From Paragordius varius (Eukaryota > Animalia > Nematomorpha): 64,000 bases of DNA. A program made the translations under genes and the position numbers. The notes below the pieces were generated by a model that was not told the origin of the DNA, searched no databases, and saw nothing but the letters and a program-made list of their open reading frames with translations. The DNA lies in NCBI GenBank assembly GCA_964247055.1, contig OZ176058.1, positions 4,650,001 through 4,714,000 on the forward strand, written 5' to 3'. Positions 3,891-60,681 of the stretch are shown piece after piece (positions within the stretch are counted from its first letter, which is position 1; every line of letters starts with the position of its first letter).

Positions 3891-5317
3891 ATGCCAGGAA
3901 TCATTTTCCATATTTTACTGCTAATGGTTTGGATTTTAAATTTCAAAGAAATAGTGATTTGCCTTTCACCACACCAGCGAAATGTATCAACATCTTACGA
4001 AGGAAGAAAAAACCTCAAAATTTTAATGCCCAGCCGGGGACAAACCCAAATTCGAGACAAAAAACCGACGAAAGGTTTTTTATCGCAAAACATGAAACCA
4101 AAATCATTAAGGATTGAACTTTTAACGAGTAGTAGCAGTAGTAGTACATCCTCGTTAACAACGACAAAACTACTAAATCAAAATGAAAAGATATTGGACC
4201 TGTATGGGAAACCTATAACATCGAATTTACCTTTGACAGTTTCTGGTCAAACGCAACAAAAGAATCATGGAATGACTCCTCAAGAACCATCTTTTTTCTT
4301 AGCAAATTTTACGGATCTGGCCTGTAATGCGAATGAAACTGACCTAATCTCTCATATCTTAGGTGGTCGTCAAAAATCAGTTAATACCAATACTACCAGC
4401 ACATCCATACTCAATTATGATAATATGAAGGAGGGTGATTACATTGAAAATCTTACGATGGCTATTGAGGAGTCACGTCGTGCCATTTACACAGACACCC
4501 TATACCAATACAGTGATTTGTTTCGGGTTATAGCTACGTTTTATATGACCGTCATTTTTTGCATCGGTCTCATGGGTAATATTATGGTCGTACTTGTCGT
4601 TACGGTTAAAGTAGGTGGCGGTTCAACCGCTAAAAACCCACTCAAAATTTCGACCAACGTATATTTGGTGAGTCTCGCTGTGGCGGATTGTATGTCTTTG
4701 CTCGCCGCTGTTCCCGAACAAGTCGTAAGTCATTTCATCCCCGTTAATCGATGGGTCCTAGGCGGTCGCGTTATTTGTTCGGGGGCTATTTTTGTCCAAT
4801 ATCTATCTATCAATGCATCCGCCTTATCAATTACGGCGTTTACGTTGGAACGTTACCTGGCTATCTCGTACCCGCTGAAGGCTCAAGTCATTTGCACTTA
4901 CAAACGAGCTCAAAAAATTGTGTTGGGCGTATGGATTTTTTCTCTGCTATACTGTAGTCCATGGCTCTTTCTAACTTCCACGTTTCCCATGTACATTGTC
5001 TTGGAACGGACAGAAACAGTTTACGCGAAACCTGGACAACCGCAAAATACTAGTAATTCGCATAGCTCTTTACCCTTTGGGGTGGCACCAAATAATTCTG
5101 TCCTAAAAAATAATAACTGTTTTTTCCTTCAAAACAACGCAGCTGTTTCATCTCATGATGATGACAAAAAAGAAAAAGGTAACCGTAAACGCCGACAAGC
5201 ATTTGTAGGAACAAAAGGGAGGACGAAAGACCTTAATATTGATGAATTCACTTCCTCATATCATTACGCTACTCCAAAACAGAACTATATGACTTTCTCT
5301 AGTCCACACTATTACAA
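3891..5317 (+). CDS. TRHR: Copy 1 exon 1: N-terminus, TM1-TM4, first part of ECL2
   Basis: ORF 3858-5321; donor AA|GTAAAC at 5318 (phase 2); the donor position is conserved in all four copies. Confidence 0.88.
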
Positions 5318-8300
5318 GTAAACTAAAATTTATATATACATATAGTATATATCTACAAAATATTATTAATATTAATCAATATGTATATATATGACATTGT
5401 AAAAAATGTATGTTAGTCAAAAACGAGGAGATAGACTCATCAGTTTCAGACAGTATAGTCCATTAATTTAAATTGCAAGTAAAATAATATATAAATAAAG
5501 ACATTTTCATTCATCCTTACGTCCTTCCTTATTATTTATTGGTAAATTAGAAATTTTTTGTGCATGTTTTCCAATGTCAAAGGCCATTCATTATTATAAC
5601 TCCTGTGGTCATTTGCATATTTTAATGATTATATGCACAAAGTGTCAAAATAATATTATTATCAAGATAAGATTTTCGGTTATACATTGTTTGTATGCTT
5701 CTTGACGAATTCATTTTTAATTAAACTTTAATAACAAGATTTATTTGTTTGTTTGCAAATGGATTAAGAAAGAGAGATATAAATCTATTTTAAAAAAATG
5801 AAATGACAAATCTTTGCAATCTGTCAAAATTTGGTTGGACTTTCAAAAACTATATTTGTATGGCTTTAAGTGATATAATATAACTTTTTACCATGATTAC
5901 TTCAGTTGGGTTTAAAATTAAAGGGTGATTAAATTATAGAAACTATAAGGTTAAGAAATTTTTTTAATAGAATCAATCAATAAATTAAGACTTTGCTTTA
6001 AAATACTAAAAATGGTATTTGAAGCGATATATTAGCTATAATGATTCAAATACTATTTTTGTGTTTTATATCATAGTGTTAACTTTGCTATGTATTGTTA
6101 TGTCCATCATAAATTTAAAAAAGAAAAAGCGTTTAGATTATATAACCGATTAAAAATTCATGGAATTTAAACCCAAAAACCAGATTTTTTGGAATAACCG
6201 TTTCTTTTGAACTATGTTAACCAAACTATTGGTTTGGATTCCTGTAAATATTTGTCTTTTGAGGTTTCTAATTTTTTTTTCATCCTATATATTTTTTAGT
6301 AGATATCCAGAAACCAATTATCCAACGATAATCAAGCAAAATATCGGAAAAATACCAATGTTCAATACAACAACTTGCATACATGGTAAAGATAATAATA
6401 ACTTAAAACGAACATTGCAAAAATATGTGAAACCCACTAAAATATTCATGAAATATCGGCGAAAAAAATCGTTTCAGTCCAATGAAAGTGATGAAAGTTT
6501 TGATTTTAACCAAACGAGGAACACAAGTAATTTGGAAGATGAGAATGAAACTATAAAATCCTTTGAAGAAAAGTTAGGGCAACAAAGCAACTTTAACGAT
6601 GATAAGAAAACGCAAACTTTCCTTAAGCAATATAATTTGAATGTACGTACTACAACTTACCCCCAAAATACTCAAACCCCTATCAAAAAAATTTACAACA
6701 GCTTAATTTCAGAAAAAGAGCCATCTTTTTATTACATAAATCATACCCACCATCAAATAATTTATAGTTGGCAACATTGTAGTTATGTCATTTCGAGAGA
6801 AGCATACCTAGGATACTATATGACAGATTTAATTGTGTTTTATGCGCTCCCACTCATAATATCTTTCATATGTTATGGACTTATCATAAGGATCTTATTT
6901 CGAACCAACAAACACGAAAAATTGGTCAGAAATCGGTTTGGAAATAAAAGTATTTTGCAAAAACATCATAATTACCGTGAAATCTCAGAGAATGGGAAAA
7001 ACAGAAAAATCGTTGGACAACAGCAAGAACGCGAACAAGATCAAACTAACTCAAATCTTTCTGACCTAAATTATATCAATACTAACATTCCAACCAAAAC
7101 AGAGCAATCTTTTGTTTCTAACAATGATTTCAATAGCGACCTACGTAATCAAATCCATCAAATTATTGATGGTGATGATAAGAATGGCGTCCCAAGACAA
7201 GGGAGGAATGATAAAATTGGTGAAATGTCAACAATCCATCAATTAACCAATTCCAACTTAAACCATGAAAACATAGCTAGTCAAAACAGTCAAAACAACA
7301 GAAATACTTCACCTCAAACCATTTTTTCCCATCTAGAGATGGTTCCAACAAAATCAATATCTGATACCAATAAAAACAACGAATTAATAATCAATTTGAG
7401 GGATGACAGAAGCGTTTTGCCTGATGGCAGCCAGATTAAAAGTGTTAAAAATGGGAATGAGTCAAATCAATCATTGACTAATCCTAGCACCAGAAAATCT
7501 GAAAAAATTATGGATCTTTCACCAACAAAAACATCAACATTATTATCCCATGTAAGTTAAACAATTTTTATGTTTTGTAATTATTTTTATCGTTAGAGAG
7601 AATAACTAAACTTTTTTCTCTTCTCGTAACTATAAGATACACATAAATCAATCAAAACCAAAAAAAAATTACATATCTCAATTCAAAAAAGTTGACTGAC
7701 TGACTATTATTTTATTTTGTGAAAATGGCAAAATGAATCCCAATAGGATCTGTTGTCTATCCATCCCTCTCACTTTTTTTTGATATAATTAATATTTCTG
7801 GTTGTTTTTATGGTCAAGCCTGGTTTAACTGGAAAATCTTGAAAAGAGTATTGATAGTTATTTACTATTAAATATATAACGTTTTAAATCACATTGGAAC
7901 AAATTTTCTAAAAAATAATGAAATTGCTTAAACTAAAAAACTTATTATGTTTAATCGAAAAAATTAAATACCCTGGTTGGGATTGTATACTAAATTATAC
8001 TGTTAATAGATGTTTGATTTATCCACAATTTACAGTAAAAATTGAAATTATATGTTTTCTAAATTATGTTATCTCCTGCTTTAAAAAAATTAAAAGACTT
8101 ATTTTCAAAAAAAGATGTGGGGTGTCGCAAAATAGGGGATAAATATGTAAAATGTTTACATACTCAATATATTATCAATAATTTGTATAAGTATACAGTA
8201 GAAAATGAAATTTTACGGATAAAACCTTAAAATATAAAGATAAATATTTTTTTCTCAAAGACAACCCCATACTTTTATAAACTTCATTTTCAAAAATATA

Positions 8301-11300
8301 ACCATTGTTTTAAATTGTAAAGTATAAAATTGATATATATATTGGTAACACAAGCAATTATATATTTTATAATTATAATTAGATAATTATAAAAGTATGG
8401 GGTTTAAGAAAAAAATGTCCTTATATTATTACTTTTTGTCCATAGTATAATTTCAGTTTTTACTGTATTACTAATGTTTAAAAAGTGTTGTGTTGCTTTT
8501 AAAAAAAATCGTCTTTTAGTTTTTACATTTTTTCTGCATATTATTTTTTAAATATGATAGTTATTGCCCAATTATTTTTTTCAAAATTTAATGGAAAATC
8601 TCATAAACATTTATTGACGGTTTAAAATTTATAAGGACTTTTCACGATCAAAATTTTTTTCAACATTTTATTTTGTAGTATCTGCCTAATCATTAATTAT
8701 TTAAGTATAAAAAGGCCCAAATATATTGAGTTCACTCTTTTATTCTACTTTTCTTCCAAAATTTACTTAAAAACTAAAATTCAAGGACATTATGACACTT
8801 TTTAAACGTCTGCCTTTTTAAAATATTACTTATAAATAATAAATTAATATAATTACTTTTTTTGTTTTCTTAATTTAAAAACTTAATCATAATGCTTTTT
8901 CGTAAGTTAACTACATTTTGGCTAAATTTTAAATTTAAATCTTTAAAAAATGATATTTTTAAACCAATTTTTTAATCTTAATGTAAAGAAGGTTAACCTA
9001 AGCTGATTACAAATTTCTAAACCGTTTTTCTGATATTTAATCTATATTATATATCTATAAAATAACCTTCAATTATTAATATAGATATTTATATTTTTTA
9101 ATTTTAAACTACCATTTAAAAATTGTATCGTACAATACTAAATCTCCAGAGGATACGTAGAATATGTTGCGATACTCTGATAGATTTTTAAAACAATATT
9201 ATATTATTTATCAATTATTTTTATTTTATGTAATATAAAAATATTTTTTGATATGTCGGCATAAAACATTTTCAATTTAAATTTAATTGACAAAATGCTA
9301 AATATATATTGTGTAAGTATTTAATATACAGTAAAAATTAATCATTACTTGGGCAAAACGTAAAAAGTAAAAACTAATGTTTTTTATAAATAAAAAGTAT
9401 TTATCCACCAATTTTAAATATAATTTTTTGTAAACCTAATTAAGAGTTAAAATTATATATTTTGTCCATATTTAAAATGTGTATAAAGAGGATGGAAAGA
9501 TTATGCCATATTTACAGTAAAATTAAAATTATATGGAAAAATTGTATAAGACAAATCTACTTTTTTAATCTTTGATTTTTCCTTTATATACGATCCAAAA
9601 CTATGGGTTAAATAAGAAATATTGTTATTATGAATATTTATTAGTTTTTAATTTAAGTATATCTGAATTTTATTGGAATCGTTTGATAGAAAAATGAAGG
9701 TATATTTCTTTTTTTCAACCCAAAACAATAGGTAATTACAATCATATTGGTATATTAAAATTTAATTTTTTTCATATATTGAATAGAATAAAATGATAAC
9801 GACAAAGACGGAAACCAAATTTATTCAACCTTCTTATCAAGACAAAACTGATTTCCTATCAAACATGGCAAAAGTTAATAGAGATTTCCAACAAATTATT
9901 GATTCTGGAAAATCCCCTGCACCTCCGAATAAAAAAATGAGGGCCAGTAATAGTTCTTTCACAAAAGCCCGTAAAATTAATCGCAAATATACTGCCATTT
10001 TTCGACCAAGCCCATCTCAACGAAAACGATTCAATAATAAATTAACAAATAATTTTCTTAATTCTCAAGAGTTATACTGTTCAGTCTCTACTTTGTCCCC
10101 TTTAGTGCTTAAAAATAAAGCGAATGGAGGAGCAATATCAAGCCATATTACAGCAGTACAATTTTAAAATATACAGACTAAACGAACTATATACATGAGT
10201 TTTTTTTTCATTATATTTTTTTAACCTTAATATATACTATATAAAGTATTATTTAACAAAACTGATGATATATGGACAAAACGTAAAATATAAAGACAAA
10301 TATTTTTTTCTAAAAGACAACCATACTTTTTAAATCATGATTTTTGTTTAAATTGGCATGTCTAACCCATACTTTGCTCCTTAAAACAATCATTTATTTA
10401 GTTATAACTAAACCATGAATCTATTTGTAAAAACATATTTGTCTTAATCTGTGTCTTTACGTTGTTTTGTTTTGTCTGTGTAATTTTTTCTACTGTAATC
10501 ATCAGAATATCAACAACAGCAAGATGAATTTCCAAGAAAGACCATCTATATGGTCAATCCGTTCAGGTCTAGAGAAACGATTAAGTCGACTCACAATGGT
10601 TTCCAATAGTCCCTCCCCTTCGCCCCCACCCTACGTGTTAACGACACACAAAAGACGTGAAAAGCGTTCGGGAAAATCCAAGCTAAGAACCAAAATGCAG
10701 GTCAGTTTTGTTTTAGTTTTTTTTTCTTAAATTACTTTTTTGTGTTTTTAAAAAACATTATCGCTCAAATGTATTGGTGTCAGAAAAAAATTGCTTTATT
10801 CGATTAAATAATTATTCTGTTTTTAATTAATATGGTCCTGAGACATTTCACAGTAAAAACTGAAATTATACAATGGACAAAACGTAAAAATATATGGACA
10901 AATATTTTTTTTAAAGACAACCATACTTTTTTAAGCTTCATTTTTTTATATAATACTCATTGTTTCAGTATGCATATTTATAGAATTGATATGTATATTG
11001 GTGACACAATTAATTACACATTTTAAAATTGTAATTATATATAATTATATGAGAAAAAGGGTTAAAAAATGTATGGTTTTTTAGAAAAAAATATTTGTCT
11101 TTATATTTTTACATTTTGTCCGTATAATATCAGTTTTACTTTATTAGATATTTCAAAAATAGGCAAACTTACAGTAGCATATGGCATAAAACAATATTAG
11201 TCCACAAAAGAATATATAAATGTTTTCCTACAAAAAACAAGAGGATATTATGTATATGTCTCTATACAACTAGGCTTGTTTTTTTGGAAAAAAACATTTT

Positions 11301-14300
11301 TTATTCTTTTAGGAACTGATAATGTTTTATGCCATACGCTACTGTATTCTTAAATAAATTCATTTTTATTAAATTATTTAAGCAATGTAATATTTTAAAG
11401 ATTATTTTTTATTTTGTATTTTTGCAAATTTTTAATTTGGCGTACAAAATAAAGCATAATCCTATTTATGATAACAAAACAATTATTAATTTTAAAACAT
11501 TTTTATAGTTTTAATTATTTTTTTTATTTTTAATACATGACATGGTTCCTAAATCATTACTTATAATTAACAATTAATTAAAAGTAAGGATAAGGTTGAA
11601 TAATTTCGATTAATTTTAACCAAGGACACACTTGGTAAAAACTAATTATAAGAAGTTTCATTGACATTAAGGTTATTTTATTGGTTAAAATTATGCTGGC
11701 TAGCCAATAAAAAAAAAGCAAACAACATATTATTTTATTTTTATAGTAAAATAGCTTCTTTAAGATTTTTATATCTGAGTCAAACTGAAATAACACCCCA
11801 CTTTTAGTTTTGTGAATCACAACTGCGGTTTTAAAAAAGATCTATCTACTAATTTATAATAAAAAAATTTTAAACTTCGCTTAATGTTTAAATTTACTTT
11901 TAACTAATATTTGTAGAAAAAAACAGCACAAATTAAATTAGCGAAAGGATATATAAAAAATTATGTGAAACCTAAATTTATCCGATTTTTTAATCAAACA
12001 AATTTTAATACCATGATACAGTTAAAATTAGAGTTAATAAGACAAAACAAAAAGCAAGAAGGTTTACTAAAGCTAATTAGACTATCGTTTAAGGCGAAAT
12101 AAAAAGGAATGTGTAAACTCGATAACACACATTTTTATTTCACCATTAAATGAAATGTACACTTTTTTTATTTTATACACATTTAACACTCTGTTTTTGT
12201 TTCCATATGTTACGATTTTCATTCTGTACTCTCTATTTATCAAACCAAACGATTGGTAACCATACCATCTCCCATTTATAATTCAAATTTACTCTTGAAC
12301 GATTTAAGTTCACCCTTGAACAATTCAAATTTACCCAAATAAATTATGTGTTTTCGGGCAGCTAATATAACTCACCATAAATATGAGAAAATAAATTTTT
12401 AATACATAATTTATTATTTTTTCAGCGTTATATTAATTTTAAACAGAATTTCAGACTATAAAAATATTAAAAAATAAAAATAAATCTTAATTATTTTAGA
12501 GTGTATTTGAATTGTCCAAGGAGGAATTTGAATTGTTCGGCAAATTTGAATTGTTTAAGAGGGAATTTAAATTTTTCAAGGGTAAATTTGAATTGTTGAA
12601 GGGTGAATTTAAACTGTAAATGGTATATGTACTTTAATGATGTTTGTTCGATTCACATTATTCTTGGCTATATTTTTACGTTTTGTCCATAATATAATTT
12701 CGATTTTTACTATTTATGTTTTGTCTTTAAATTTTAGTTATCAATTTACCATATTGTTTTTTATACATTATTTAAGGTTATCAAAATGTTGGTTGTAGTC
12801 GTGACGTTATTTGCCCTTCTATGGATGCCTTACCGATTTCTAGTCGTTTATAATTCTTACGCACCTCCTGAAAACAAAATAACCAATCTTTGGTTTCTAC
12901 TTTATTTATCATTTATCATAGATTTTTATCATAGATTTTGCATTCTGAAACTAATTTTTACCAAACAAATATTTATAATATTTAATTGTGCAAATATTAG
13001 TTTATTCATTTTTAAATGGTACAATGAGATCAAATTTAACAAAAAAAATCTTTTTAGAAGCAAAGTGTTAGATATAAGAAAGGCCAGTTTAAAAAGTACA
13101 ATGTCGAATCACTTGCTAAATACACGACATGATTTCTTAAAATATGCTTTACAGTCAAATTTTCTTTTACTTATATACAGTAAAAATTGAAATTATACGG
13201 ACAAAATTTAATATATATAGAAATATTTTCTACAATCATACTTTTTAAAATTTTGCTATATAATTTATTTACAATCGTAAACTACAAAATTGATAGTGGT
13301 ACCAATTTACATTTCTATTTTACATTTTGCTGTTGACAACAATCAGTTATATATAAAAAAATCAAGATTTAATAAATATGGTTGTCTTTTAGATAAAAAT
13401 ATTTGTCTTTATATTTTTATGTTTTGTCCGTATAATTTCAATCTTTACTGTATGTTTATTATGTTGGTTTTGAGACAACTTTCCTGAAAACGTGTTTATC
13501 ATTTTCCAAAAGTCGGGCCATTTTTAATAGTACACAGGGTAAACCCCAAGTATTTTAAAAAAATATCAAAATTTTTGAAAACAGGTAAGCCCCATTCAGA
13601 TTTACTAAACATGGGGGCCCTATTTTTTCATTAGAAATTTATTAAATAATAACAGAAAAAATAATTTATGCTTTATCTAATATAAAAATCGCATGTGTGT
13701 ATTAGACCCATCCTAATAGATATCACAGACGCTTGCGTAGAAATCTTTTCGAGTTTGAGTTTTCAAGAACACCATGGCAGGAGTTAACCAGTTTAATCGA
13801 TGCCTTTTTCCAGGAGTTATCGTTTTCTAAGAGACTGTAACAATGATATTGTGAGATAGTAGTCATTTTCTTTCTATAATATACCCTGCCTTTACCCCTT
13901 ACCCAACTCAGTTTTTTATATATAGATAGAGATTGATTGGGTCGAAATTCGCGACATGTTCTATACATTCGGTCGGGGTTGTCTTTATCCACGAAATAGG
14001 GTTGTTAACTTTATTTAAAAAAATTCTTTTAATGACATTGGAAACTTATTCTGTAGGATTAAACACCGTTTATTGTTTCCTGTACATGCATAAGTCGCCT
14101 TTATTGGAGTTATATTCGGTTTTCAAAATTTCAATTACTGTTTCTACCAACCGTATGTCTTTGTATGATAGGATGCTGGTGTGCTTAATAAAAGGTTTTT
14201 CTTTCGAATTCTTATGTCCGAAGTAGATGGCATTATCAGTTACGATTTGACATGTAAATCCATATCCATCTTAGTGCTTTCCATACACTTTGCAATAAAA

Positions 14301-17016
14301 ACGAATATACTTTGGGCACATCCACTTCGATCCAGCGGGTGGCGCTATTGATAGTTAACAAGTAGTAACTATTGGCTGGTCAATCAATATTTCTATGAAG
14401 CCGCTCCCATGTCTTAGTATAAATATTTCACCTATGGAATTTTCGGGGCCATTTGGCCTGGTGGATTGATATGCCTTGTAATTCTCTACCCATCGGATGA
14501 GATCGTTTCCTATGTCATTGATACTGAACTGCGGTCATTTAGAAAAGGTAGATTGCAGGTTAACTCGACGCTTTTAGATATTCTCTCTCCCAATTTTGTT
14601 ATTAGGGCCATTTTTACTTTATTTCGAAGTTTCCTTTATGGTAGTTTTTTCATCAACTGTTTCTTTTTAGTTACAAAATCATCCCCTTTATAAAGATTGA
14701 TAGAGAGGGGTAATCTTGATAAGGGGTCAGCCAAATTTATTTGATCATTTTTATATTTCTAACAAATGGACTTATAAATCCATATTTGTACAGTAAAAAT
14801 CAAAATTTTACGGACAAAAATAAAATATAAAGACAAATGTTTTTATTAAAAAGACCATACTTTTTCAGACCTTAATTTTTCCCATAGTAGCTATTTAATT
14901 GCATTTGTAAATAAAGAATTGATTGTGTTAGTTATATATATCTTTATATCAGATTTTGCCATTTAAAACAATGAGCTATATTGAAATAAATCAAGATTTA
15001 AAAAGTATGGTTGCCTTTTAGAAAAAAATATTTGTTTTTATATTTTTACGTTTTGTCCGTGAATCAGTTTTTACTGTAATATAGAATTTGGGTTTTTAAT
15101 ATCTTTTTTCCTAAAGACCACCTATAAAAGCCCTAAGTATCTGGAAGAATTAGATTAATTTTTGCCATAACAAATTCATACTTTTCTGTTACCGCATTTG
15201 TTTGACTTAACTAAATCGCATATTATTTAATCAATTTTATCGCTCTTACAGGTACAAACTGTTTTGTCGCCTCATGGTTTTCATCAACAATGCCATGAAC
15301 CCATTTCTGTACAGCGCTTTGTCTGTTAAATATCGTCGAGCTTTTCGTAAATTCTGTCGATTCCATTTGTTGTGTGGAGCGCAATACTTGTGGCCTTTCC
15401 CTTGGAAAAAACTTGGGCGCAAAGATGGGAGCACGCTATCAAAATCCATAACATTTCGAACAGGTAGGTGGCGTATCTTTAATTTTTTTAATTTTTTGCG
15501 TTATTGTATATTATATTATTTTAGAGTAAAACTTAAAATTATTTAGTAAAGAATGTGTTTTTAGATATAGATCTTCAAGCAGTCCGCGCATTAACAGTAA
15601 AAAATTAAAATTTTCACAGACAAAACGTAAAATTAATAAGACAAATTTTTTTCGACCGCTCTTCTCTACTTTTTTAAACTTAAAGTTAAATACAGCTAAT
15701 TGATTGCAAAGTATATAAAAAAGATATGAATTGGTAATATCAACTTTATACTTAACGATTGCAATTAAATAGCTTATAAAAAAAATTTAGGGGTAAAAAC
15801 ATGTGATTGTGTTTTGAAACGCGTTTTTTTATTTTTCATAGTTTTGTCCTTAACAAAAAAAATATTTTTAGATGTTGATTTCTCAAGGAAACGCCTTCCC
15901 TCCACATTCTTTCGCGAGGACAGCAAATTCAATAATGGTGACGAAGAAGAGATGGACAGTTTCTTAGAGTCGGAATATCTCAATCCTGTGGGACAAAACC
16001 GCAAATCTGCCAATATCTGGACAAAAAAACATGGAGAAAAAATCGATTTAAACTCCACCGCCATAGATGATAATCTGGCGAGCAGACCAAAATTAAATTC
16101 TCCCATAAAACCGATTCTGAAAAACGCTGCATTAAAATCTAACATCATGTATTTGAATGTGGACGACTCAATTGGTCGTCCCTCCTTTAAGGGTGGTGGT
16201 GTTAGGAAGGGACCATTTTCTCGACAAATCTCAAGGCTAGAAACTGCGTCTCATCACGACGATATTTGGAAATTACAGGAGAGGCCTTCAACTTCATCTG
16301 GGCTATTTAAAACGCGTAGTGCTTACCAGCTAGAAGAACCTTTAATACAATCCCACCCTTATGAAAATGTTTACAACATTACAGAACAAGAAATCAAATT
16401 ACATAAAAATGCAGCAGTATTAGATAGAGCACCACTTATGACAGATTTCAGGAAATTACCTGAAACATATATATCTTGTTTTTTCACAAACAACTATACA
16501 AACAAAAGCCAAAACAACATTCCCTCACTTATCCCAAGAAGTAGTCCTTTCAAAAATAATTTCCCTTCTTCCTACAAAACTCCAGCTACAGGAGGTATTT
16601 GGCAAAAACGTTTCGATTTACCCTACAACAATGTATTAAATAAAGAATCATCTAGTCAACCAGAAAAAGAACCTGCCTTACTTTTTACTAATACCGCCAC
16701 GATAAAAGAAATTCTTAGCAGCAGCAATTCTGCAGACGAAGAAGAAAAGTGGAATTATAATTTTTACACATCAGCAGTTGGCCATTCTCATGAATCTGAT
16801 ACCCATCGTTTGATTCAAACGCAAGAAAGAGATGACTGGCAAAATTTACCTCAAAGGAAAACAAAAACCATATCATCGTCTTTAACTAATACTAATAATA
16901 ATAAGCAAATAAGCAACATAAAATATTCTCCAAGCATGTCTTTTGCCGACACAGTTTGGGTCAAACGCGTCCTATTAAATGGACGCCTAAGCGTTTCACT
17001 CGAAAGTCGTCTCTAA
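3891..17016 (+). CDS. TRHR: Copy 1 (A-type): complete 7-exon TRH receptor-like class A GPCR, ~1570 aa
   Basis: Exons joined by hand with consistent phases: 3891-5317, 6303-7551, 9787-10155, 10506-10700, 12777-12892, 15252-15463, 15872-17016 (4713 nt, no internal stop). TRHR-like motifs: TM1 GN, TM2 YLVSLAVAD, TM3 QYLSINAS..SITAFTLERY, TM4 VW..SLLYC, TM5 YMTDLIVFYALP, TM6 VIKMLVVVVTLFALLWMPYR, TM7 FCR..NNAMNPFLY, helix 8 KYRRAFRKFC. An in-frame TAA at 3849 makes 3891 the first in-frame ATG unless an upstream exon exists. The symbol denotes family, not proven orthology. Confidence 0.9.
6303..7551 (+). CDS. TRHR: Copy 1 exon 2: rest of ECL2, TM5, first part of ICL3
   Basis: Acceptor TAG|A at 6302 is conserved in all copies; contains QHCSYVISR and TM5; donor CAT|GTAAGT at 7552 (phase 0). 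Confidence 0.88.
8196..8465. mobile_element. Family A MITE (TA|CAGTA..TACGGACAAAA, ~90 bp TIR) in intron 2; orthologous copies end at 21219, 38589 and 51914
   Basis: TA-CAGT start, ACTG-TA end, inverted AAGACAACCC(C)ATACTTTT / AAAAGTATGG(GG) blocks. Confidence 0.65.
9787..10155 (+). CDS. TRHR: Copy 1 exon 3: ICL3 (123 aa, phase 0-0)
   Basis: Acceptor AATAG|AAT and donor GCA|GTA conserved in four copies; frame open in all four. Confidence 0.75.
10506..10700 (+). CDS. TRHR: Copy 1 exon 4: ICL3 (65 aa, phase 0-0) with PPPY and a basic cluster
   Basis: Acceptor CATCAG|AAT, donor CAG|GTCAGT; joins as KMQ|VIKML, matching the KQVTKML start of TRHR TM6. Confidence 0.82.
11172..11344. mobile_element. 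Family B MITE (TA|CAGTAGCGTATGGCATAAAAC), ~170 bp; orthologues near 25485-25658, 41844-42013 and 55468-55637; independent copy at 768-879; relative near 26930-27047
   Basis: ~70 bp imperfect TIRs ending CCATACGCTACTG|TA. Confidence 0.72.
12272..12623. mobile_element. Family D foldback MITE in copy 1 intron 4
   Basis: Five GGGTGAATTTGAATTGTTCAA-type units in the right arm ending ACTGTAAATGG|TA; internal part is the reverse complement of 1281-1540. Confidence 0.72.
12777..12892 (+). CDS. TRHR: Copy 1 exon 5: TM6 and ECL3
   Basis: Acceptor TAAG|GTT; VIKMLVVVVTLFALLWMPYRFLVVYNSY; donor TG|GTTTCT (phase 2, weak). Confidence 0.88.
13178..13450. mobile_element. Family A MITE in copy 1 intron 5; orthologue at 43881-44160
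   Basis: TA|CAGTAAAAATTGAAATTATACGGAC ... GTCCGTATAATTTCAATCTTTACTG|TA. Confidence 0.75.
13720..14755 (-). mobile_element. Ty3/Gypsy LTR-retrotransposon pol fossil (RNase H end plus integrase) in copy 1 intron 5
   Basis: Minus-strand translation gives INLADPLSRLP (RNase H end), WERLH, YYLLTINSATRWIEV and IVTDNA (integrase D,D motifs), with many stops and frameshifts. Confidence 0.8.
14791..15076. mobile_element. Family A MITE bounding the Gypsy fossil in copy 1
   Basis: TA TSD and ~90 bp TIRs; same site in all four copies. Confidence 0.78.
15252..15463 (+). CDS. TRHR: Copy 1 exon 6: TM7, NPxxY, helix 8
   Basis: Acceptor TTACAG|G with a branch-like CTTAAC upstream; W|YKLFCRLMVFINNAMNPFLY; donor G|GTAGGT (phase 1). 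Confidence 0.9.
15872..17016 (+). CDS. TRHR: Copy 1 exon 7: C-terminal tail ending -ESRL
   Basis: Acceptor TTTTAG|AT completes a GAT codon; ORF open to TAA at 17016. Confidence 0.85.
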
Positions 17017-17155
17017 TCAATCAGACATTATAATTATTAATTGATATTATATGAAATTTTAATTTATAAATATTTACGACAATATTAATACTAAAAAGGA
17101 AATAAATTAAATATACATATTTATGTATATATATATATATATGTATGTATATATA

Positions 17156-17339
17156 CAGTCATGTATCCTTTATTTTAACAATTTTTTTTCGTTTATTGGG
17201 AATTAATATTTGGTAAAGAATGGAAAAAAACAAGAGCTCTATAACAATATCATATTCATTAAAAAGGTATAAGAATTATATTTTTATTTGTTAAAGAAAA
17301 GAGCTCAATGGTATTAACCATATCATATTAAGATTAAGG
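17156..17339. mobile_element. Left arm only of a family C foldback MITE, fused to copy 2 TM1
   Basis: TA|CAGTCATGTATCC start; homology to 32798-32995 stops at AAGATTAAGG, where gene sequence begins. Confidence 0.72.
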
Positions 17340-20300
17340 GTTCATGGGTAATATTATGGTCGTACTTGTCGTTACGGTTAAAGTAGGCGGCGGTTCAACC
17401 GCTAAAAACCCACTCAAAATTTCTACCAACATATATTTGGTGAGTTTCGCTGTGGCAGATTGTATGTCTTTGCTCGCCGCTGTGCCCGAACAAGTCGTAA
17501 GTCATTTCATCCCCGTTAATCGATGGGTCCTAGGTGGTCGCGTAATCTGTTCAGGCGCTATTTTTGTCCAATATCTATCTATCAATGCTTCGGCCTTATC
17601 AATTACGGCTTTTACGTTGGAACGTTACCTGGCTATCTCGTACCCGCTGAAGGCTCAAGTCATTTGCACTTACAAACGCGCACAAAAAATTGTGTTGGGC
17701 GTATGGATTTTCTCCCTGCTGTATTGTAGTCCATGGCTCTTTCTAACTTCCACGTTTCCCATGTACATTGTCCTCGAGAGGACAGAAACAGTTTACGCGA
17801 AACCTGGACAACAGCAAAATACTAGTAATTCGCATAGCAACTCTTTACCTTTTATACTGTCACCAAATAATTCTGTCTTATATAAAAACTGTATTTTCCT
17901 TCAAAACAATTAAGTTGCTTTACCTCATGATGGCGACAAAAAAGAAAAAAGTGACCGTAAACGCCGACAAGCATTAGTAGGAACAGAACCGAGGACAAAA
18001 GACATAAATATTGATGAATTCACTTCCTATTATCATTACGCTACTAACAAGGTTTTTTCACCAAAACAGAACGATATAACTTTCTCTAGTCCACACTATA
18101 ACAAGTATACTAAAATTTATACTTAATATATATATAGTATAAAATCATTATTAATAATATTAATCAATATGTATATATAACATTGTAAAAAAAATGTATG
18201 TTAATCAAAAACGAGGAAATAGACTCATCAGTTTCAGACAGTATAGTCCATTAATTTAGATTGCAAAATAGACATTTTCATTAATCCTTTCGTCCTTTCG
18301 TCCTTACTTATTTATTGGTAAATTAGAAATTTTTTGTCCAATGTCAAAGGCCATTCATTATTATAATTCCTGTGGTCATTTGCATATTTTAATGATTATA
18401 TGCAGCACAAAGTGTCAAACTAATATTATTATCAAGATAAGATTTTTGGTTATACATTGTTGCTTGACGAATTCATTTTTAATTAAACTTTAATAACAAG
18501 ATTTATTTGTTTTTGCAAATGGATTAAGAAAGAGAGATATAAATCTATTTTACTTTAAAAGATAAAATGAAATGACAAATCTTTGCATTTATCTGTCAAA
18601 AATTGGTTGTACTTTTTTTCAAAACTATATTTGTATGGCTCAAGTGTAAGAAACTATTTTAAGACGGTCTCTTAGTTGAGTTAATATTAGGAGGGTCATT
18701 GAATTAAATATAGAAAACTATAAGGTTAAAAATTTTTTTTTACCAGAATCAACGTTAAATAATGAGGACTTTGCTTTAAAATACTGAAAACGGGTATTTG
18801 AAGCGATATATTAGCTATAATGATTCAAATACCTTTTGTGTTTTATATCAAAGTGTTAACTTTGCTATGCGTATTGTTATCCAATCTTCATTATAAATTC
18901 GAAAAAAACCAATTTAACATTCATAGAATTCAAACCCAAAAACCAAATTTTTTTAGAATAACCGCTTGTTTCGAAATATGTTAACCAAACTATCACTTTT
19001 GATCCTTTTGAATATCTTTCTTATGGCGTTTCTATTTTTTTTATCCTATATAGTTTTGGTAGATATGCAGAAACCAGGTATCAAACGGTAAGCAAGCAAA
19101 ATATCGGAAAAATACCAATGTTTAATAAAACAACTTGCATATATGGTAAAGAAGATAATAACCTAAAACTAACATTGCAAAAATATGTGAAACCGCCTAA
19201 AAATTTCATGAAATATCGGCGAAAAAAATCATTTCGGTCCAATTTAATTTAAACCAAACAAACTTTACAACAATGGAATATGAGAATAAAACTATAAAAT
19301 CGTTTCAACAAAAGTTAGGGCAACAAAGCAACTTTAACGATGATAAGAAAACGCAAACTTTCCTTAAGCAATATAATTTAAATGTCCCTACTACAACTTA
19401 CCCACAAAATACTCAAACTACTATGAATATTCAATCTTCAATGGACCTTTCTTGTGTAGAAAAAGAGCCATCTTTTTATTACATAAATCATACACACCAT
19501 CAAATAATTTATAGTTGGCAACATTGTAGTTATGTCATTTCGAGAGAAGCATACCTAGGATACTATATGACAGATTTAATTGTGTTTTATGCGCTCCCAC
19601 TCATCATATCTTTCATATGTTACGGACTTATCATAAGGATCCTATTTCGAACCAACAAACACGAAAAATTGGTCAGAAATCGGTTTGGAAATAAAAGTAT
19701 TTTGCAAAAACATCATAATTACCGTGAAATCTCAGAGAATGGGAAAAACAGAAAAATCGTTGGACAACAGCAAGAACGCGAACAAGAACAAACTAACTCA
19801 AATCTAACTGACCTAAACAATTCATCAACCAACATTCCAGCTAAAACAGAGCAATCTTTGTTTCTGACCTTAATAAACACTATGATTTCAATAACGACAA
19901 ACGTAATCAAATCCATCAAATTATTGATAATGATGAGAATGGCCTCCCAAGACAAGGGAGGAATGATAAAATTGGTAAAATGTCAACAATACATCAATTA
20001 TCCAATTCGAGCTTAAACGATGAAAACATGGCTAGTCAGAACAGTCAAAACAATATGATTACTTCACCTCAAACCATTTTTCCCCATCTAGAGATGGTGC
20101 CAACAAAATCAATATCTCATACCAATAAAAACAACAAATTAATAATCGATTTGAGGAATGACAGAAGCGTTTTGCCTGATGGCAGCCAGATTAAAAGTGT
20201 TAAAAATGGGAATGAGTCAAATCAATCATTGGCTAATCCTTGCACCAGAAAATCTGAAAAAATTATGGATCTTTCACCAACAAAAACATCAGCATTATCC

Positions 20301-23300
20301 CATGTAAGTTATGTTTTGTAATTATTTATTTTTATCGTTAAATAGAGAGATAGACAAATATAACTAACTAAACTTTTTTTATCTTAACGTAACCATAAGA
20401 TACACATAAATCAATCAAAACCAAAAAAAATACATATCTTAATTCAAAAAAGTTGACTGACTGACTATTTTATGTATGAATCCCAATAGGATCAGTTGTC
20501 TATCCATCTATCTCCCTTTTTTTTATATAATTAATATTTCTGGTTGTTTTTATGGTCAAGCCTGGTAATATAAACTTAAAATGGTGAAAAGAGTATTGAT
20601 AGTGTTATACTAGTTAATATATAACGTTTTAAATCACTTTGGAACAAATTTTCAAAAATGATAATTTTTTTAAACTCAAAAAACTATGTTTACAGTCTTA
20701 ATCCGAATCGAAAAAATTAAATATTCTGGTTGGGATTATATTAAATTATACTGTTAATAGATGTTTGATTTATCAACAATTCATATTTGAAACCACATGT
20801 TTTCTATTGTGTTATCTCCGGCTTTAAAAAAATTAAAAGACAATTTTTTCAAAAAAAATGGTTTTGGGGTCGCAAAATAGGGGATAAATATGTAAAATGT
20901 TTACTTACTCAATATATTTTCAATAATTTGTATAAGTACATTAAAAACTCAAATTATATTATGGACAAAATCTAAAAATATAAAGACAAATATTTTTTTC
21001 TTTAAGACAACCCCATACTTTTTTAAACTTCATTTTCAAAAATATAACTTATTGCTTTTAATTGTAAAGTCTGAAATTGATATGTATATTGGTGACACAA
21101 TCAATTATATAATTTATATGAAAAAATTATGGATTATAAAAGTATGGGATTGTCCTTTAGAAAAAAAAAATGTCCTTATATTTTTACTTTATGTCCAAGT
21201 ATAATTTCAATTTTTACTGTATTAAAAGCAGTTGTTTTGCTTTAAAAATATCGTCCTTTAGTTTACATTATTTTATTTTTTACTGTGAATATGATTTATT
21301 ATTGCCCAATCATTTTTTCTCAAAGTTTGATGGAAAATCTCATAAATATTTATTGACGGTTTAAAATTAATAAAGACTTTTCACGATAAAAATTGTTTTT
21401 AAATATTTTATTTTGTAGTATCTGCCTAGTAGCCCATAGAATGCGAAATTTTTATTTTGGCTTAGTATCATTGATATATTCATCGTAATAATCGATTTTT
21501 GAATTTGCTAAAAACTCTACCTTGAAAGATGTGTGTGAATGTTAAATATAAAAATATATCAAGCTAATTTTATTGAAATCAATTATTTTTTATTTCAACA
21601 TAAAAAGGCCCAAATATATTGAGGTCACTCTTTAAAGCTTTATTCTATTTTTCTTCCAAAATATACTTAAAACCTGAAATTCAAGGACATTTTGACACTT
21701 TTTAAAATATTTGAAAATATAATACTTATAAATAATAAATTAATATAATTACTTTTTTTGTTTTCTTACTTTAATAACTTAATCATTTAATGTCTATCTT
21801 TTTCTAACTTAACTACATTTTGGCTAAATTTTAAATTTGAAAACTTTAAAAAATGATATTTTTAAACCAATTTTTTAATCTTAATGTAAAGAAGGTTAAC
21901 CTAAGCTGATTACAAATTTTTAAATCGTTTTGCTGAAATAAATTTTAATCTATATTCTATATCTATATTAGAACCTTCAATTATTTATATAGATTTTATA
22001 TTTTTAATTTTAAACTACCATTTAAATATTGTAATGTACAATATATAAAACTCCAGGGGATACTTCGAATATGTTGCGATACTCTGATAGATTTTAAAGC
22101 AATTTTATATTATTTATCAATTATTGTTATTTTATGTGGTATAAAAATATTTTTTTGATATTTCGGCATAAAACATTTTTAATATAAAGTTAATTGATAA
22201 AATGCTAAAAATATATTGTGTATGTAATTAATATACAGTAAAAATTAAACATTACGTGGGCAAAACGTAAAAAGTAAATTTAATGTTTTTTTAATAAATT
22301 AAATTATTTTTTTATCCAACAATTTTTAAAATAGTTTTTTGTAAATCTAATTAAGAATCAAATTATATATTTTGTCCATATAATTTAAATGTATTTACAG
22401 AAATTATTTAATGTAAAAATTATGTCTTATTTACAGTAAAATTGAAATTATATGGGAAAAATTTGCTAGACAGATATATTTTCATCAATCAGTTAAACTT
22501 TTTCTATCTTTGATTTTTCCTTTATATACGATCCAAAACTATGAGTTAAATACGAAATATTAAATTTAATAAGAATATTATTAGTATTTTTTAAGCATAT
22601 AATTTCAATTTCTATTGGAATCGTTTGATAAAAAAATATTGGTATATCTCTTTTTTCCAACCCAAAAACGATAGGTAATCACAATCAAATTGTTATTAAA
22701 ATTTGATTTCTTACCCATATATTGAATAGAATAAAATTATAACGACAAAGACGGAAACCAAATTTATTAAACCTTCTTATCAAGACAAAACTGATTTCTT
22801 ATCAAACATGGCAAAAGTTAATAAAGATTTCCAACAAATTATAGATTCTGCAAAATCTGCCCCTGCACCTCCGAATAAAAAAATGAGGGCCAATAGTAGC
22901 TCTTTTACAAAAGCCCGTAAAATTAATCGCAAATATACTGCCATTTTTCGACCAAGTCCTTCTCAGCGAAAACGATTCAGTAATAATAAATTAAATTTAC
23001 GGCCATATAATAATATACCTACAACTCAAGATTTATACTATTCAGTTTCTACTTTGTCCCCTTTAGTGCTTAAAAATGCAAATGGAGGAACAAAATCAAG
23101 CCATATTACAGCAGTACAAATTTTAAATATACAGGCTAAACAAACATAAATACATGAGTTTTTCTTTTTTCAAAGAAACCTTATTTTTTTGAAGAAAATT
23201 CTTATAAAAACTATTTAATTATAATACCAATTTATATCTGTAATCCATACTTAGCTATTTAATTCAATCATTTAGTTATACAGTAAAAACTGATGATATA

Positions 23301-24329
23301 CGGACAAAACGTAAAAATATAAAGACAAATATTTTTTCTAAAAGACAAACATACCTTTTAAATCATGATTTTTGTTTAAATTGGCATGTCTAACCCATAC
23401 TTTGCTCCTTAAAACAATCATTTATTTAATTATAACCAAACCATGAATCTATTTGCAAAAATATATTTGTCTTATTAGTCTTTACGTTGTTTTGTCTGTA
23501 TAATTTCAATTTTTACAAAAACTATAATATATATAATTGATCGTGTTACCAATTTACATCTCTAACCCATACTTTGCTATCCAAAACATCAATTATTTAG
23601 TTATAATTTTAAATTATTCTATTTGCAAACATATATTTGTCTTAATTTACCATGTTTTTTCTGTAATTTTATCTACTGAAATCATCAGAATATCAACAAC
23701 AACAGCAAGAGTTTCCAGGAAAGACCATCTATATGGTCAATCCGTTCAGGTCTAGAGAAACGATTAAGTCGACTCACAATGGTTTCCAATAGTCCCTCCC
23801 CTTCGCCCCCACCCTACATGTTAACGACACATAAAAGACGTGAAAAGCGTTCGGGAAAATCGAAACTTAGAACCAAAATGCAGGTCAGTTTTTTTAGTTT
23901 TTTTCCTATATTACTTTTTTGGTTCTGATTTCGTTTTATCAAAAAAAATTATTGGCCAAATGTATTTGTTTAATAAAAAATATTTATTAAATAATTATTC
24001 TGTTTTTTATTTAATATGGTCCTGATAACAGTAAAAGTTAGAATTATACGGACAAAATGGAAATTATATATTGACAAATATTTTTTCCTAAAAGACCATA
24101 CTTTTTTAAGCTTCAGTTAATTACTATTTTAAAATTGTAATTTTATAATTTATGGGTTTAAAAATGTATGGTTGTCTTTTTTTACATTTTTCCGTATAAT
24201 TTCAGTTTTTACTGTAATTAGTTTTGTGTTTCTAAAATTATCGCTCAAATATATTTGTGTCAGAAAAAAATTGTCTATTGATTAAATAATTATTCTGTTT
24301 TTTAATTAATTCCTGATGCAATTCAAATA

Positions 24330-24623
24330 CAGTAAAAACTGAAGTTAAACTATCAAAATGTGAAAATATATAGACAAATATTTGTTTCTAAAAGACAACC
24401 ATATTTTTTTAAGCTTCATTTTTTTATGTATAACTCATTGTTTCAGTCTGCATATTATAGAATTGATATGTATATTGGTGACACAATTAATAACATATTT
24501 TAAAATTATAATTAAATAGCTAATATGGGTAAAATTAAGGTTTAAATATGTTTGGTTGTCTTTTAGAAAAAATATTTGTCTTTATATTTTTACATATTTT
24601 CCGTATAATTTCAGTTTTTACTG
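24330..24623. mobile_element. Family A MITE, one unit of a local tandem amplification in copy 2 intron 4
   Basis: TA|CAGTAAAAACTGAAG ... TTTCAGTTTTTACTG|TA. Confidence 0.72.
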
Positions 24624-26600
24624 TAATTAGTTTTGTATTTAATTCCGTTTTATAAAAATTATTGCTCAAATGTAAATGTGACAGATATGAAATAATTATT
24701 CTGTTTTTTAATTAATATGGTCCTGATACAATTCAAATACAGTAAAAACTGAAATTATATTATGGACAAAACGTGAAAATATATAGACAAATATTTTTTT
24801 TTCTAAAAGACAACCATACTTTTTAAATCTTGTTTTAGTTCAATCATTGTTTTAAATGGCAAAGTCTGAAATAAAGTATATAACTAACAAAATCAATTCT
24901 ATATTTTAAAATTGTAATTTTATATTTTATATGAGAAAAATTAAGGTTTAAAAATGTATGCTTGTCTTTTAAAAAAAATATTTGTTTTTATATTTTACAT
25001 TTTTTCCGTATTCTAGTTTTTCCTAAATTAGTATTTTGTTTCTGATTGCGTTTTATAAAAAAAAATTATTGGCCAATTGTATTTGTTTCAGAAAATTAAT
25101 TAAATAATTATTCTGTTTTTTAATTAATATGGTCCTGAAAAAATGCAAAGAAATAGTTACAAAAATAATGACTACTTTTTTTCTGATTTCAAAATGACAA
25201 GACAAAAAATGGTTAAAACTAAAATTAAAATCAACTTAAAAACTTTTTTTCCAAATCCGTTGTTGTTTAAAAGAAAATTATCATGTTTTATGTCTTTAAA
25301 AACGGTTCCAATTTTAATTATTATTAAATACTTCTAAATATGTTTGTCAAGATTTTCTAAAACAGACATGAACAGCACAGGTGCCTCCGGGCTGCCTTTT
25401 TAACTAAAAAACCAAGGCGGACCACATTTAAAAATAATATACCGGCATAATACTTATTAGATATTTCAAACATTTACAAACTTACATTAGCGTATGGCAT
25501 AAAACAATATGAGTCCACAAAAGAATAAAAAAATGTTTTTCTAAAAAAAACAAGGGGATATTATAGATATGTCTATATACAACTAGGCTTGTGTTTTTGA
25601 AAAAAAAACATTTTTTATTCTATTAGGAACTAATAATGTTTTATACCATACGCTACTGTATTCATAAATAAATTGTATGAGAAATATCATTTTTTTTAAA
25701 TTATTTAAGCAATTTAATATTTTAAAAAATATTTTTTATTTGGTATTTTTGCAATTTTCAGTTATCTGCACACAAAATAAAGCAACATCCTATTTATGAT
25801 AACAAAACAATTATTAATTTCAAAACACTTTTACAGTTTTAATTATTTTTTTATTTTTAATACAAGACATGGTTCCTAAATCATTACTCATAATTAACAA
25901 TTAATTAAAAAGTAAGGATAAGGTTGAATAATTTCGATTAATTTTAACCAAGGACACACTTGGTAAAAACGAATTTTAAGAATTTATATTGACATCAAAG
26001 TTATTTTAGTGGATAAAATTATGATGGCTAGCCAATAAATTAAAAAAATAATAATAATAAATTATTTCATTTTTATAGTAAAATAGCTGCCTATTTTTAT
26101 ATCTATATCAAACTGAAATGACAACCCACTTATAGTTTTGTGCATCAGTAAAAAAAAGATTTTTCAACCATTTTATAGAAAAAGATATTTTAATTAATAA
26201 AACTTCACTTAATGTTTAAATTTAATTTTAACTATGATTTGTAGAAGAAAAACAGCACAGATTAAATTCACGAAAGGATTTATAAAAAAATATATTAAAC
26301 CTAATATCCGATTTTCTAATGAAACTAATTTTGCTACTATGATACAGTTAAAATTAAAGTTAATAAGACAAAACAAAAAGCAAGAAGGTTTACTAAAGCT
26401 TATTTATTATACTACTTTCTAGGGCGAAAAAAAGGAATGTGTAAATTCGATAAAACACAAATTTTATTTCACCATTAAATTAAATATAAACTTTTTTTAT
26501 TTTATACACATTTATCATTCTGTTTTTGTTTGCCTATGTTACCATTTTTAATCTGTACTCCCTATTTCGCAAACCAAACGATCGATTACTATACAATTTC

Positions 26601-29106: not shown

Positions 29107-29169
29107 TACAATAACCAATCCGTTATTTACCATTACAGTATATAAGCTTATACCCATCCTAATAATTTA

Positions 29170-60629: not shown

Positions 60630-60681
<52 letters not shown>

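Follow-up and report, generated by a model that had tools for sequence, protein, structure and literature searches.

Can a frame of 1571 codons encode a working receptor of the TRH type, and are the long segments between its helices really part of the protein? This question is raised by a gene on the forward strand at positions 3891-17016 of a 64-kb stretch of horsehair worm DNA (the window).

Gene model and tandem array

The gene, here called copy 1, consists of seven exons, and the model was rebuilt independently. All exons have GT donors and AG acceptors with consistent phases, and the joined frame of 4713 nt (4716 nt with the stop codon) has no internal stops, which bears out the phase-consistent coding sequence of the original prediction. 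The region sizes given there were likewise reproduced, with about 205-210 aa in the N-terminus, 280 aa between TM4 and TM5, 400 aa between TM5 and TM6 and 430 aa after TM7.

Exon 1 (3891-5317) starts with the ATG and a hydrophobic, signal-peptide-like stretch (aa 1-27), followed by the N-terminal region up to approximately aa 205, TM1-TM4 (aa 206-365) and 110 aa with which an insert in ECL2 begins; its donor is AA/GTAAAC in phase 2. This insert (4986-6747; aa 366-625, about 260 residues) extends from the end of TM4 up to the conserved hairpin of ECL2, where it stops at strand one, and is interrupted by intron 1 (5318-6299). Exon 2 (6300-7551, donor CAT/GTAAGT) completes the insert and continues with the ECL2 hairpin, where the conserved Cys, Tyr and Arg are found, with TM5 (aa ~645-680) and with the initial 212 aa of ICL3. 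Exon 3 (9787-10155; 369 nt, 123 codons, phase 0-0) lies entirely within ICL3 and could be a cassette exon. With exon 4 (10506-10700; 195 nt, 65 codons, phase 0-0) ICL3 ends in a basic juxtamembrane stretch (KMQ) directly before TM6, and the terminal Q aligns to the conserved Q which precedes V-x-KML in the homologues. Since exons 3 and 4 are both phase 0-0, shorter ICL3 isoforms would be possible. TM6, with the motif LWMPYR and the residues Y6.51, R6.52 and N6.58, is encoded by exon 5 (12777-12892), whose donor TG/GTTTCT is weak, yet kept in all four copies of the gene. Exon 6 (15252-15463) continues with TM7 (FCR with R7.39, and NPFLY) and helix 8 and reaches into the C-tail, of which exon 7 (15872-17016) contains 380 aa, followed by the stop codon.

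The joins of exons 4 and 5 (MQ/VIKML) and of exons 5 and 6 (NLW/YKLFCR) fall into conserved sequence and show exactly the family spacing when compared with the homologues and human TRHR. The other four of the six joins lie inside inserts, where a check by homology is impossible, and are based on the splice signals, the phase and the fact that the intact paralogue retains these sites. The sequencing runs which contain the stretch are DNA runs, and the putative RNA runs of this species were empty at the stretch. We regard copy 1 as a well-supported predicted gene model with a putative full-length seven-exon transcript.

On the forward strand copy 1 heads a tandem array of four copies, two of the others being 5′-truncated and broken. 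Copy 2 (B type, 17342-32677) starts within TM1 at the equivalent of nucleotide 680 of exon 1, has lost the acceptor AG of exon 2 and carries frameshifts of 16 nt and 1 nt in exon 2; it looks like a pseudogene. The same 5′ truncation and loss of the exon 2 acceptor are found in copy 4 (B type, 48002-63420) together with a 1-nt frameshift in exon 2. Copy 3 (A type, 34471-47701) shares the seven-exon structure and every insert of copy 1 and is intact over about 1375 codons; its first 146 codons are replaced by a repeat element upstream, and a 2-nt deletion near the 3′ end costs the last ~58 aa. The array may extend past the window, because the sequence 3′ of the copy 4 stop codon matches the spacer following copy 2.

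Receptor type and ligand pocket

The Pfam profile 7tm_1 matches exon 1 (profile positions 1-126, E=3.4e-24), exon 2 (125-190) and exon 5 (204-246). As the profile stops in the NPxxY region, this motif was read directly in exon 6 and aligned to TM7 of human TRHR. A hydropathy scan (KD>1.5) gave six helix-sized peaks and the N-terminal signal-like segment and no peak, that is no extra TM segment, in the inserts; TM7 stays under the cutoff and was located by homology. The class A microswitches N1.50 (GNIMVV), D2.50 (LAVAD), ERY, LWMP and NPFLY are present in the same columns as in human TRHR.

Among receptors of solved structure, human TRHR (PDB 7WKD, 7X1T, 7X1U, 7XW9) ranks first with each of the four TM pieces. 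The margin to the next family is 1e13 for the exon 1 piece (E=1.5e-29 vs 1.4e-16), 6e3 for the exon 2 piece (TRHR 178-220, E=1e-6 vs 0.006), 2e4 for the TM6 piece (264-292, E=6.3e-7 vs 0.015) and 3e3 for the TM7 piece (302-336, E=5e-7 vs 0.0017). Both proteins have in common Q105, Y106, N110, the C98-C179 pair, Y181, R185, Y192, W279, Y282, R283, N289 and R306 (human numbering) as well as ERY, LWMP, NPxxY, helix 8 and a RAAFRK-like motif.

In a rooted maximum-likelihood tree the core is placed within a clade of 51 rows (support 100/99, stem length 1.54) containing vertebrate TRHR-like, amphioxus, mollusc, leech, arthropod and tardigrade proteins and Caenorhabditis NMUR-4, presumably the former name of TRHR-1; where the core falls among these members is not settled by the tree. 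Receptors for ecdysis-triggering hormone (ETHRs), a related family, are often labelled "TRHR-like" by automatic annotation, and the horsehair worms are a moulting phylum. The outgroup consisted of 11 pyrokinin/capa/NMU-type receptors and bona fide ETHRs were left out of the tree, so the phylogenetic check that had been proposed covers part of the families: the core groups with the TRHR-type receptors and apart from the pyrokinin/capa/NMU-type receptors, within a sampling that excluded ETHRs, so that its separation from this sister family is at most indirect. Among 30 names looked up from the top 150 matches there was no ETHR and no insect TRHR-like protein. One insect protein among these names turned out to be a pyrokinin-type receptor. 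Relative to the sampled families, ETHRs not being among them, the structure matches and the clade support the assignment of the predicted core to the TRH-receptor-type class A GPCRs, as had been proposed. The closest sequences are arthropod proteins with 49-53% identity over the core, and the protostome TRH-type receptors (C. elegans TRHR-1, the Platynereis EFLGamide receptor and the arthropod "TRHR-like"/EFLamide receptors) belong to the same clade. A TRH-like system of protostomes is established (PMC11004728).

The original prediction had named four pocket positions, and these do align to human Y106, N110, Y282 and R306. The pocket is in fact more complete than claimed. When the eight TRH-contact residues listed from the cryo-EM structure (PMC9437008) are compared, the signature Q3.32-Y3.33-Y181-R185-Y5.39-Y6.51-N6.58-R7.39 is identical to human TRHR at all eight positions, whereas the outgroup has none of them; the disulfide partners C98 and C179 (C3.25 and the ECL2 Cys) and N110 are likewise identical. 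This signature is of the vertebrate and scallop type. The arthropod receptors have K7.39 instead of R7.39, and the nematode group, with P3.32, F181 and K7.39, retains only 4-5 of the eight residues. The horsehair worms are the sister phylum of the nematodes. With contact residues identical to those of the human receptor, where nematode TRHR-1 is altered at 3-4 of the eight, copy 1 is a ready target for deorphanisation. We infer that the ligand would be a short, amidated peptide resembling TRH, which would occupy the transmembrane pocket in the usual way, and that the receptor would signal via a G protein. No candidate gene for a ligand precursor was seen in the 64-kb window.

Size, coding status and character of the inserts

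For the sizes of the regions we compared copy 1 with 76 complete homologues. From W4.50 to C45.50, the ECL2 Cys, there are 288 aa in copy 1 and 25-33 aa in the homologues (about 30 aa from TM4 to the Cys in human TRHR), none of which has an ECL2 insert. ICL3 (439 aa, approximately five times the family median) and the C-tail (434 aa, approximately seven times) exceed the sampled maxima of 266 and 260 aa, while the N-terminus of 230 aa is not exceptional, the sampled maximum being 299 aa. Of the four hugely expanded regions originally described, the unprecedented ECL2 and the outsized ICL3 and tail hold up, and the N-terminus is within the family range. Among the homologues compared, ECL2 is the only region without family precedent.

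Several observations bear on the question whether the inserts are coding. Calculated from the stop frequency in the introns (0.071 per codon), the chance of an open frame is P = 2.6e-7 for the N-terminus, 4.5e-9 for the ECL2 insert, 1.8e-13 for ICL3 and 5.5e-14 for the tail. The inserts have a GC content of 34-38% compared to 21-29% in the introns of this very AT-rich genome. Between copy 1 and the intact paralogue 17 of the 20 exon indels are multiples of three, in contrast to 36 of 176 in the introns (p=1e-9); all 20 exon indels fall in inserts, and in exon 3 every indel between the copies is a multiple of three. The pN/pS ratio of copies 1 and 3 is 0.49 in the inserts (Fisher p=1.6e-8; 0.51 in the ECL2 insert, p=0.0015) and 0.02 in the core (2 non-synonymous and 31 synonymous changes, p=8e-19), in paralogues which are only ~10% diverged and may be subject to gene conversion. 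Copy 3 lacks an equivalent of the first 146 codons, whose coding support consists of the open frame and the composition. Because most indels are frame-preserving, pN/pS is clearly below 1 and exon-like GC is found in every insert, the insert sequences seem to be translated often enough for selection to act. The data support the view that the extra ~1300 aa are coding and evolve under weak purifying selection or relaxed constraint, at about half the neutral rate, and the paralogue comparison indicates very strong purifying selection on the 7TM core, on the pocket residues and on the hairpin of ECL2 including its disulfide.

The inserts are hydrophilic, though not of low complexity. Searches yielded neither a Pfam domain nor a homologue or Atlas look-alike for them, and no confident fold was obtained. 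The ~260 hydrophilic residues in ECL2 are rich in N, K, T and S, 12% are aromatic, and there are 8 N-x-S/T sequons where 5.3 are expected. They include two extra Cys, kept wherever comparable (the first in copies 1-4, the second in copies 1 and 3), and one RKRR site, which is kept in copies 1-3 and reads RKPR in copy 4. The exon 7 tail, for which neither a homologue nor an Atlas look-alike was found, is a mosaic of conserved blocks; copies 1, 2 and 4 share its last 27 aa without a single difference, up to a terminal -ESRL which resembles a class I PDZ ligand. AlphaFold2 gave a mean pLDDT of 39 for the C-tail, and for exon 2 TM5 was the sole confident part, with pLDDT <50 throughout the exon-2-encoded piece of the ECL2 insert (the only piece that was folded), values which in single-sequence mode do not distinguish disorder from an orphan fold.

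Competing explanations and wider reading

We consider it probable, judging from the sequence evidence, that copy 1 encodes a functional neuropeptide receptor of the TRH/EFLamide type, in which an intact core and pocket are combined with lineage-specific loop and tail inserts serving as filler. The inserts would sit where a bulging loop leaves the helices and the hairpin lid undisturbed. They would be mostly disordered filler with scattered short conserved motifs rather than a designed architecture, the possible motifs being the extra Cys pair and the dibasic site outside the cell and Ser/Thr-rich stretches and the C-terminal -SRL ending inside. The loop inflation is probably a property of the AT-rich genome and not an adaptation of this receptor.

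A receptor of ordinary size would result if the main transcript skipped exon 3, perhaps exon 4, or was spliced inside exons 1, 2 and 7, the long frame then being present in some isoforms only. Skipping of either exon keeps the frame, and a pN/pS of about 0.5 means that the constraint on the inserts is weak. However, the 17 of 20 indels in multiples of three, the pN/pS clearly below 1 and the exon-like GC in every insert argue against this, and skipping of exon 4 would harm the core, because its 3′ end encodes the conserved juxtamembrane Q before TM6. We regard such splicing of the main transcript as unlikely. That the ECL2 insert is instead a functional extracellular module, a disulfide-stapled glycosylated lid or a ligand-capture domain, possibly cleaved at RKRR to give a two-chain receptor, appears to us rather improbable. 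The two Cys conserved in all comparable copies, the RKRR in three of four copies, the excess of sequons and the aromatic content would fit such a module, but the pN/pS of 0.51, the frequent indels, the RKPR of copy 4, the lack of a detected homologue or Atlas look-alike and the low pLDDT of the exon-2-encoded part do not.

One could also suppose that all four copies belong to a gene family in decay, in which copy 1 has just not yet been hit and no longer yields a working receptor. The 5′ truncations, acceptor losses and frameshifts of copies 2 and 4 and the lost ends of copy 3 are in line with decay; the two non-synonymous against 31 synonymous core changes, the intact pocket residues and activation motifs of copy 1 and the fact that no other TRHR-type gene which could assume the function is known here (the search being confined to the window) make it very improbable.

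Beyond the working receptor gene which we favour, we put forward as a tentative and rather speculative reading that copy 1 exemplifies a process acting on the whole proteome, by which the membrane proteins of horsehair worms gain inflated loops and tails, where weakly selected coding inserts accumulate as far as the fold tolerates them and the cores are frozen. If this was true, Plasmodium and Dictyostelium with their insert-rich proteomes would have a parallel among the animals, the inserts would show, as a natural map, where class A GPCRs tolerate insertions, and a genome-wide inflation would mean relaxed control of protein length across an animal genome. In a bolder variant, the ECL2 insert with its disulfide staple and RKRR site would have been recruited as a lid that can be cleaved.

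The ~260-aa insert lies in the one part of ECL2 that elsewhere in Bilateria keeps to a length of 25-33 aa, and the linker from TM4 to the hairpin therefore seems to tolerate an insertion of domain size, which would be useful for the engineering of fusion proteins and for ideas on the origin of loops like that of the C3a anaphylatoxin receptor (C3aR). The textbook example of a large ECL2 in a class A GPCR is C3aR, a peptide receptor whose TM4-TM5 loop (~172 aa; PMC7905230) is oversized like that of copy 1, but it belongs to an unrelated subfamily and its helix-adjacent loop residues share in ligand binding. The loop of copy 1 (~280 aa), in contrast, is fast-evolving and without detectable role, and three further regions are enlarged, unlike in C3aR. 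With 1571 aa against 303-730 aa in the 76 complete homologues (398 aa in human TRHR) the compact architecture of the family is absent. Compact size is typical for the TRH receptor family, but is not a defining trait.

Gene model and family placement

We rebuilt copy 1, the giant receptor gene at 3891-17016 on the plus strand, from the raw sequence. Its seven exons (E1-E7) lie at 3891-5317, 6300-7551, 9787-10155, 10506-10700, 12777-12892, 15252-15463 and 15872-17016, all with GT/AG flanks; the phases match, and the 4713 coding nucleotides give 1571 amino acids with no internal stop. This independent rebuild agrees with the original prediction of a seven-exon, stop-free coding sequence of that length, and the sizes predicted for the four long regions outside the 7TM core (N-terminus, ECL2, ICL3 and C-tail) are correct within a few residues.

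The E4/E5 join (KMQ/VIKML) is the same as the Q-V-x-KML of the homologues and of human TRHR, and the E5/E6 join (NLW/YKLFCR) leaves the Trp-to-NPxxY spacing exactly as in the family; the weak E5 donor GTTTCT is kept in all four copies of the gene found in the window. The remaining four joins lie inside the inserts; for these the support comes from splice signals, from phase and from their conservation in copy 3, the intact paralogue. The sole Pfam domain is the rhodopsin-family 7TM, split across E1, E2 and E5, and TM7 with its NPxxY in E6 was read directly and aligns to human TRHR. A hydropathy scan gave helix-sized peaks and one N-terminal signal-like segment, with none inside the long regions.

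The best solved-structure match of each of the four TM pieces is human TRHR, by 3.5 to 13 orders of magnitude. The best database matches (49-53% core identity) are 'TRHR-like' proteins of crustaceans, mites, a millipede, tardigrades, scallops and leeches, and the match list also includes vertebrate TRHR-like proteins and Caenorhabditis NMUR-4, which we take to be TRHR-1, as its UniRef name supports. TRHR-1 is the deorphanised TRH receptor of nematodes (PMC11004728). Among the 30 matches that were looked up no name was that of an ETH receptor (ETHR), and the sole insect, a beetle protein (P0109), is pyrokinin-receptor-like and opened the way to a true outgroup.

When 11 pyrokinin/capa/NMU-type receptors root the maximum-likelihood tree, the copy 1 core falls inside a clade of 51 sequences (support 100/99, long stem of 1.54). 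This clade holds all TRHR-like groups of the match list, the vertebrate proteins and NMUR-4 included, and the branching of the core within it is unsupported. The placement among TRHR-like proteins and apart from the pyrokinin/capa/NMU-type receptors supports the proposed TRH-receptor type; for the related ETHR family, which the tree does not include, the separation is indirect. The matched taxa, with no holometabolous insects, also fit the known taxonomic distribution of the EFLamide/TRHR system (PMC4237046) and not that of ETHR. An annelid GPCR (P0136, Owenia fusiformis) is placed outside the TRHR clade, yet on the TRHR side of the root, and has one of the eight pocket residues; it may represent a sister family missing from the tree, possibly ETHR-like.

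Hormone pocket and loop sizes

Cryo-EM has defined the TRH contacts as Q105, Y106, Y192, Y282, N289, R306, Y181 and R185, with a disulfide between C98 and C179 (PMC9437008). All eight contacts and both cysteines are identical in the copy 1 protein, as are N110, W279 and R283 of human TRHR. Elsewhere in the tree the full set of eight occurs only in vertebrate and amphioxus proteins, in scallops and in one unnamed sequence. Arthropod receptors, in contrast, have K7.39 where copy 1 has R7.39 (R306), the nematode TRHR-1 group retains only four to five of the eight, and the pyrokinin/capa/NMU-type outgroup none. Since all contacts are identical here and none is in the outgroup, the proposed retention of a TRH-type pocket is supported, and more fully than had been claimed.

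For the comparison of sizes, distances between conserved anchor positions were taken from 76 complete homologues. From W4.50 to the ECL2 Cys all homologues have 25-33 aa and the copy 1 protein 288. The ECL2 length is thus without precedent in the TRHR family, and this expansion is unique among these homologues. Even the C3a receptor, the textbook case of a large ECL2, has about 172 aa (PMC7905230). The insert separates the end of TM4 from the first hairpin strand and leaves the hairpin intact, together with its Cys and the two loop residues that contact the ligand. ICL3 and the tail likewise exceed the homologue maxima (P5.50 to P6.50: 439 aa vs a median of 86 and a maximum of 266; after P7.50: 434 aa vs 60 and 260). 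The N-terminus is long, yet inside the homologue range (start to N1.50: 230 aa vs a median of 61 and a maximum of 299), so that of the four regions originally called hugely expanded three stand out from the family and the N-terminus does not.

Coding status and nature of the inserts

The window is very AT-rich (20-35% GC across 2-kb bins; a published nematomorph genome has 26.9%). With a stop rate of 0.071 per codon, taken from the copy 1 introns, the probability that the four long regions are open by chance lies between 2.6e-7 and 5.5e-14. We also compared copy 1 with copy 3. All 20 exon indels fall within the inserts. Their length is a multiple of 3 in 17 cases, whereas this holds for only 36 of the 176 intron indels (binomial p=1e-9); exons have 4.7 indels per kb and introns 21.9. 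The 7TM core shows a pN/pS of 0.02 (2 non-synonymous vs 31 synonymous changes) and the four long regions one of 0.37-0.55 (pooled 0.49, Fisher p=1.6e-8). The GC content of the inserts is 34-38% vs 21-29% in introns. The multiple-of-3 indels, the pN/pS values and the GC content argue for translation of the inserts under weak constraint; judged by these sequence comparisons, their removal by splicing from every transcript is excluded. Although gene conversion among the copies may distort the rates, the multiple-of-3 bias cannot come from it.

Because E3 and E4 are both phase 0-0 and frame-neutral, shorter ICL3 isoforms are possible; E4, however, carries conserved pre-TM6 residues. Two small putative RNA runs with the same species label had no reads on 4701-10700, from which we draw no conclusion on expression.

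The inserts are hydrophilic (Kyte-Doolittle about -1) and rich in N, S, K and T. An origin from low-complexity sequence or simple repeats is ruled out by the share of low-entropy 12-residue windows, which is 0-1% in the ECL2, ICL3 and tail inserts and 6% in the N-terminus, where there is a Ser run. No Pfam domain was found in the inserts. A HMMER scan with E1 against 1.84 billion representative proteins gave matches confined to aa 141-398, essentially the TM1-4 core; a word-indexed homologue search with the C-tail gave no match, and neither the tail nor part of ECL2 had a usable look-alike in ESM Atlas feature searches. The blanks in the homologue and Atlas searches are weak evidence, since the proteins of P. 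varius itself appear to be missing from those libraries. Single-sequence AlphaFold models of E2 and E7 have a mean pLDDT of 42 and 39, respectively. Structure prediction recovers TM5 alone with confidence and yields no confident fold in the insert parts of these two exons; such models are compatible with disorder and are no proof of it.

Some insert features are kept among the copies. At 5118-5200 and 6375-6390 the ECL2 insert has two extra Cys, present in every comparable copy, and an RKRR site in copies 1-3 that reads RKPR in copy 4. On the cytoplasmic side, TM6 is directly preceded by a second dibasic cluster, KRREKR. All four copies are identical over the first 37 tail residues of E7, and copies 1, 2 and 4 also over the last 27 (16930-17013 in copy 1), amid surrounding tail that is about 13% different. 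In these three copies the tail ends in -ESRL, similar to a class I PDZ ligand. The sole tail helix predicted by AlphaFold falls in this last block.

Taken at the level of sequence, copy 1 reads as a receptor of TRH type whose vertebrate-like pocket is intact and which has four lineage-specific, apparently translated and weakly constrained expansions. General loop inflation in the P. varius genome would be the most economical reading of these expansions.

Tandem array and repeat elements

Copy 1 opens a tandem array of four copies with about 90% mutual identity. Copy 3 (34471-47701) keeps the reading frame through all seven exons and all inserts, over about 1375 codons; a repeat element stands in place of its first 146 codons, and a 2-nt deletion removes the final 58 aa or so. 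Copies 2 (17342-32677) and 4 (48002-63420) start at the same point within TM1, about 300 bp past the preceding stop codon, have lost the E2 acceptor and contain frameshifts; they look like pseudogenes. An assembly artefact is ruled out for the array, the four copies being about 10% different with many indels. The spacer after copy 4 matches that after copy 2, and the array may therefore extend beyond the window. The junctions of the truncated copies (17017-17341 and 47702-48001) are 93% identical and both copies begin at exactly the same base, which implies that the truncation is older than the duplication of a two-gene unit of about 30 kb, made up of one copy of the type of copies 1 and 3 and one of the type of copies 2 and 4.

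CAGCTG is not enriched in the window (1-64000), with 5 occurrences vs 2.8 expected, one of them in copy 1 exons. The sequencing runs found to contain copy 1 were all of DNA and cover its introns and exons alike. The window has 23 occurrences of a palindromic, MITE-like repeat about 270 bp long (core GACAAAACGTAAAA), at 8000-8500, 10100-10500, 33435-33704 and about 20 further intronic or intergenic sites. This repeat occupies much of the introns and took the place of the 5' end of copy 3. In the DNA runs its k-mers are hundreds of times as deep as the flanking sequence (up to about 7e5), and many false 'joints' stem from it.
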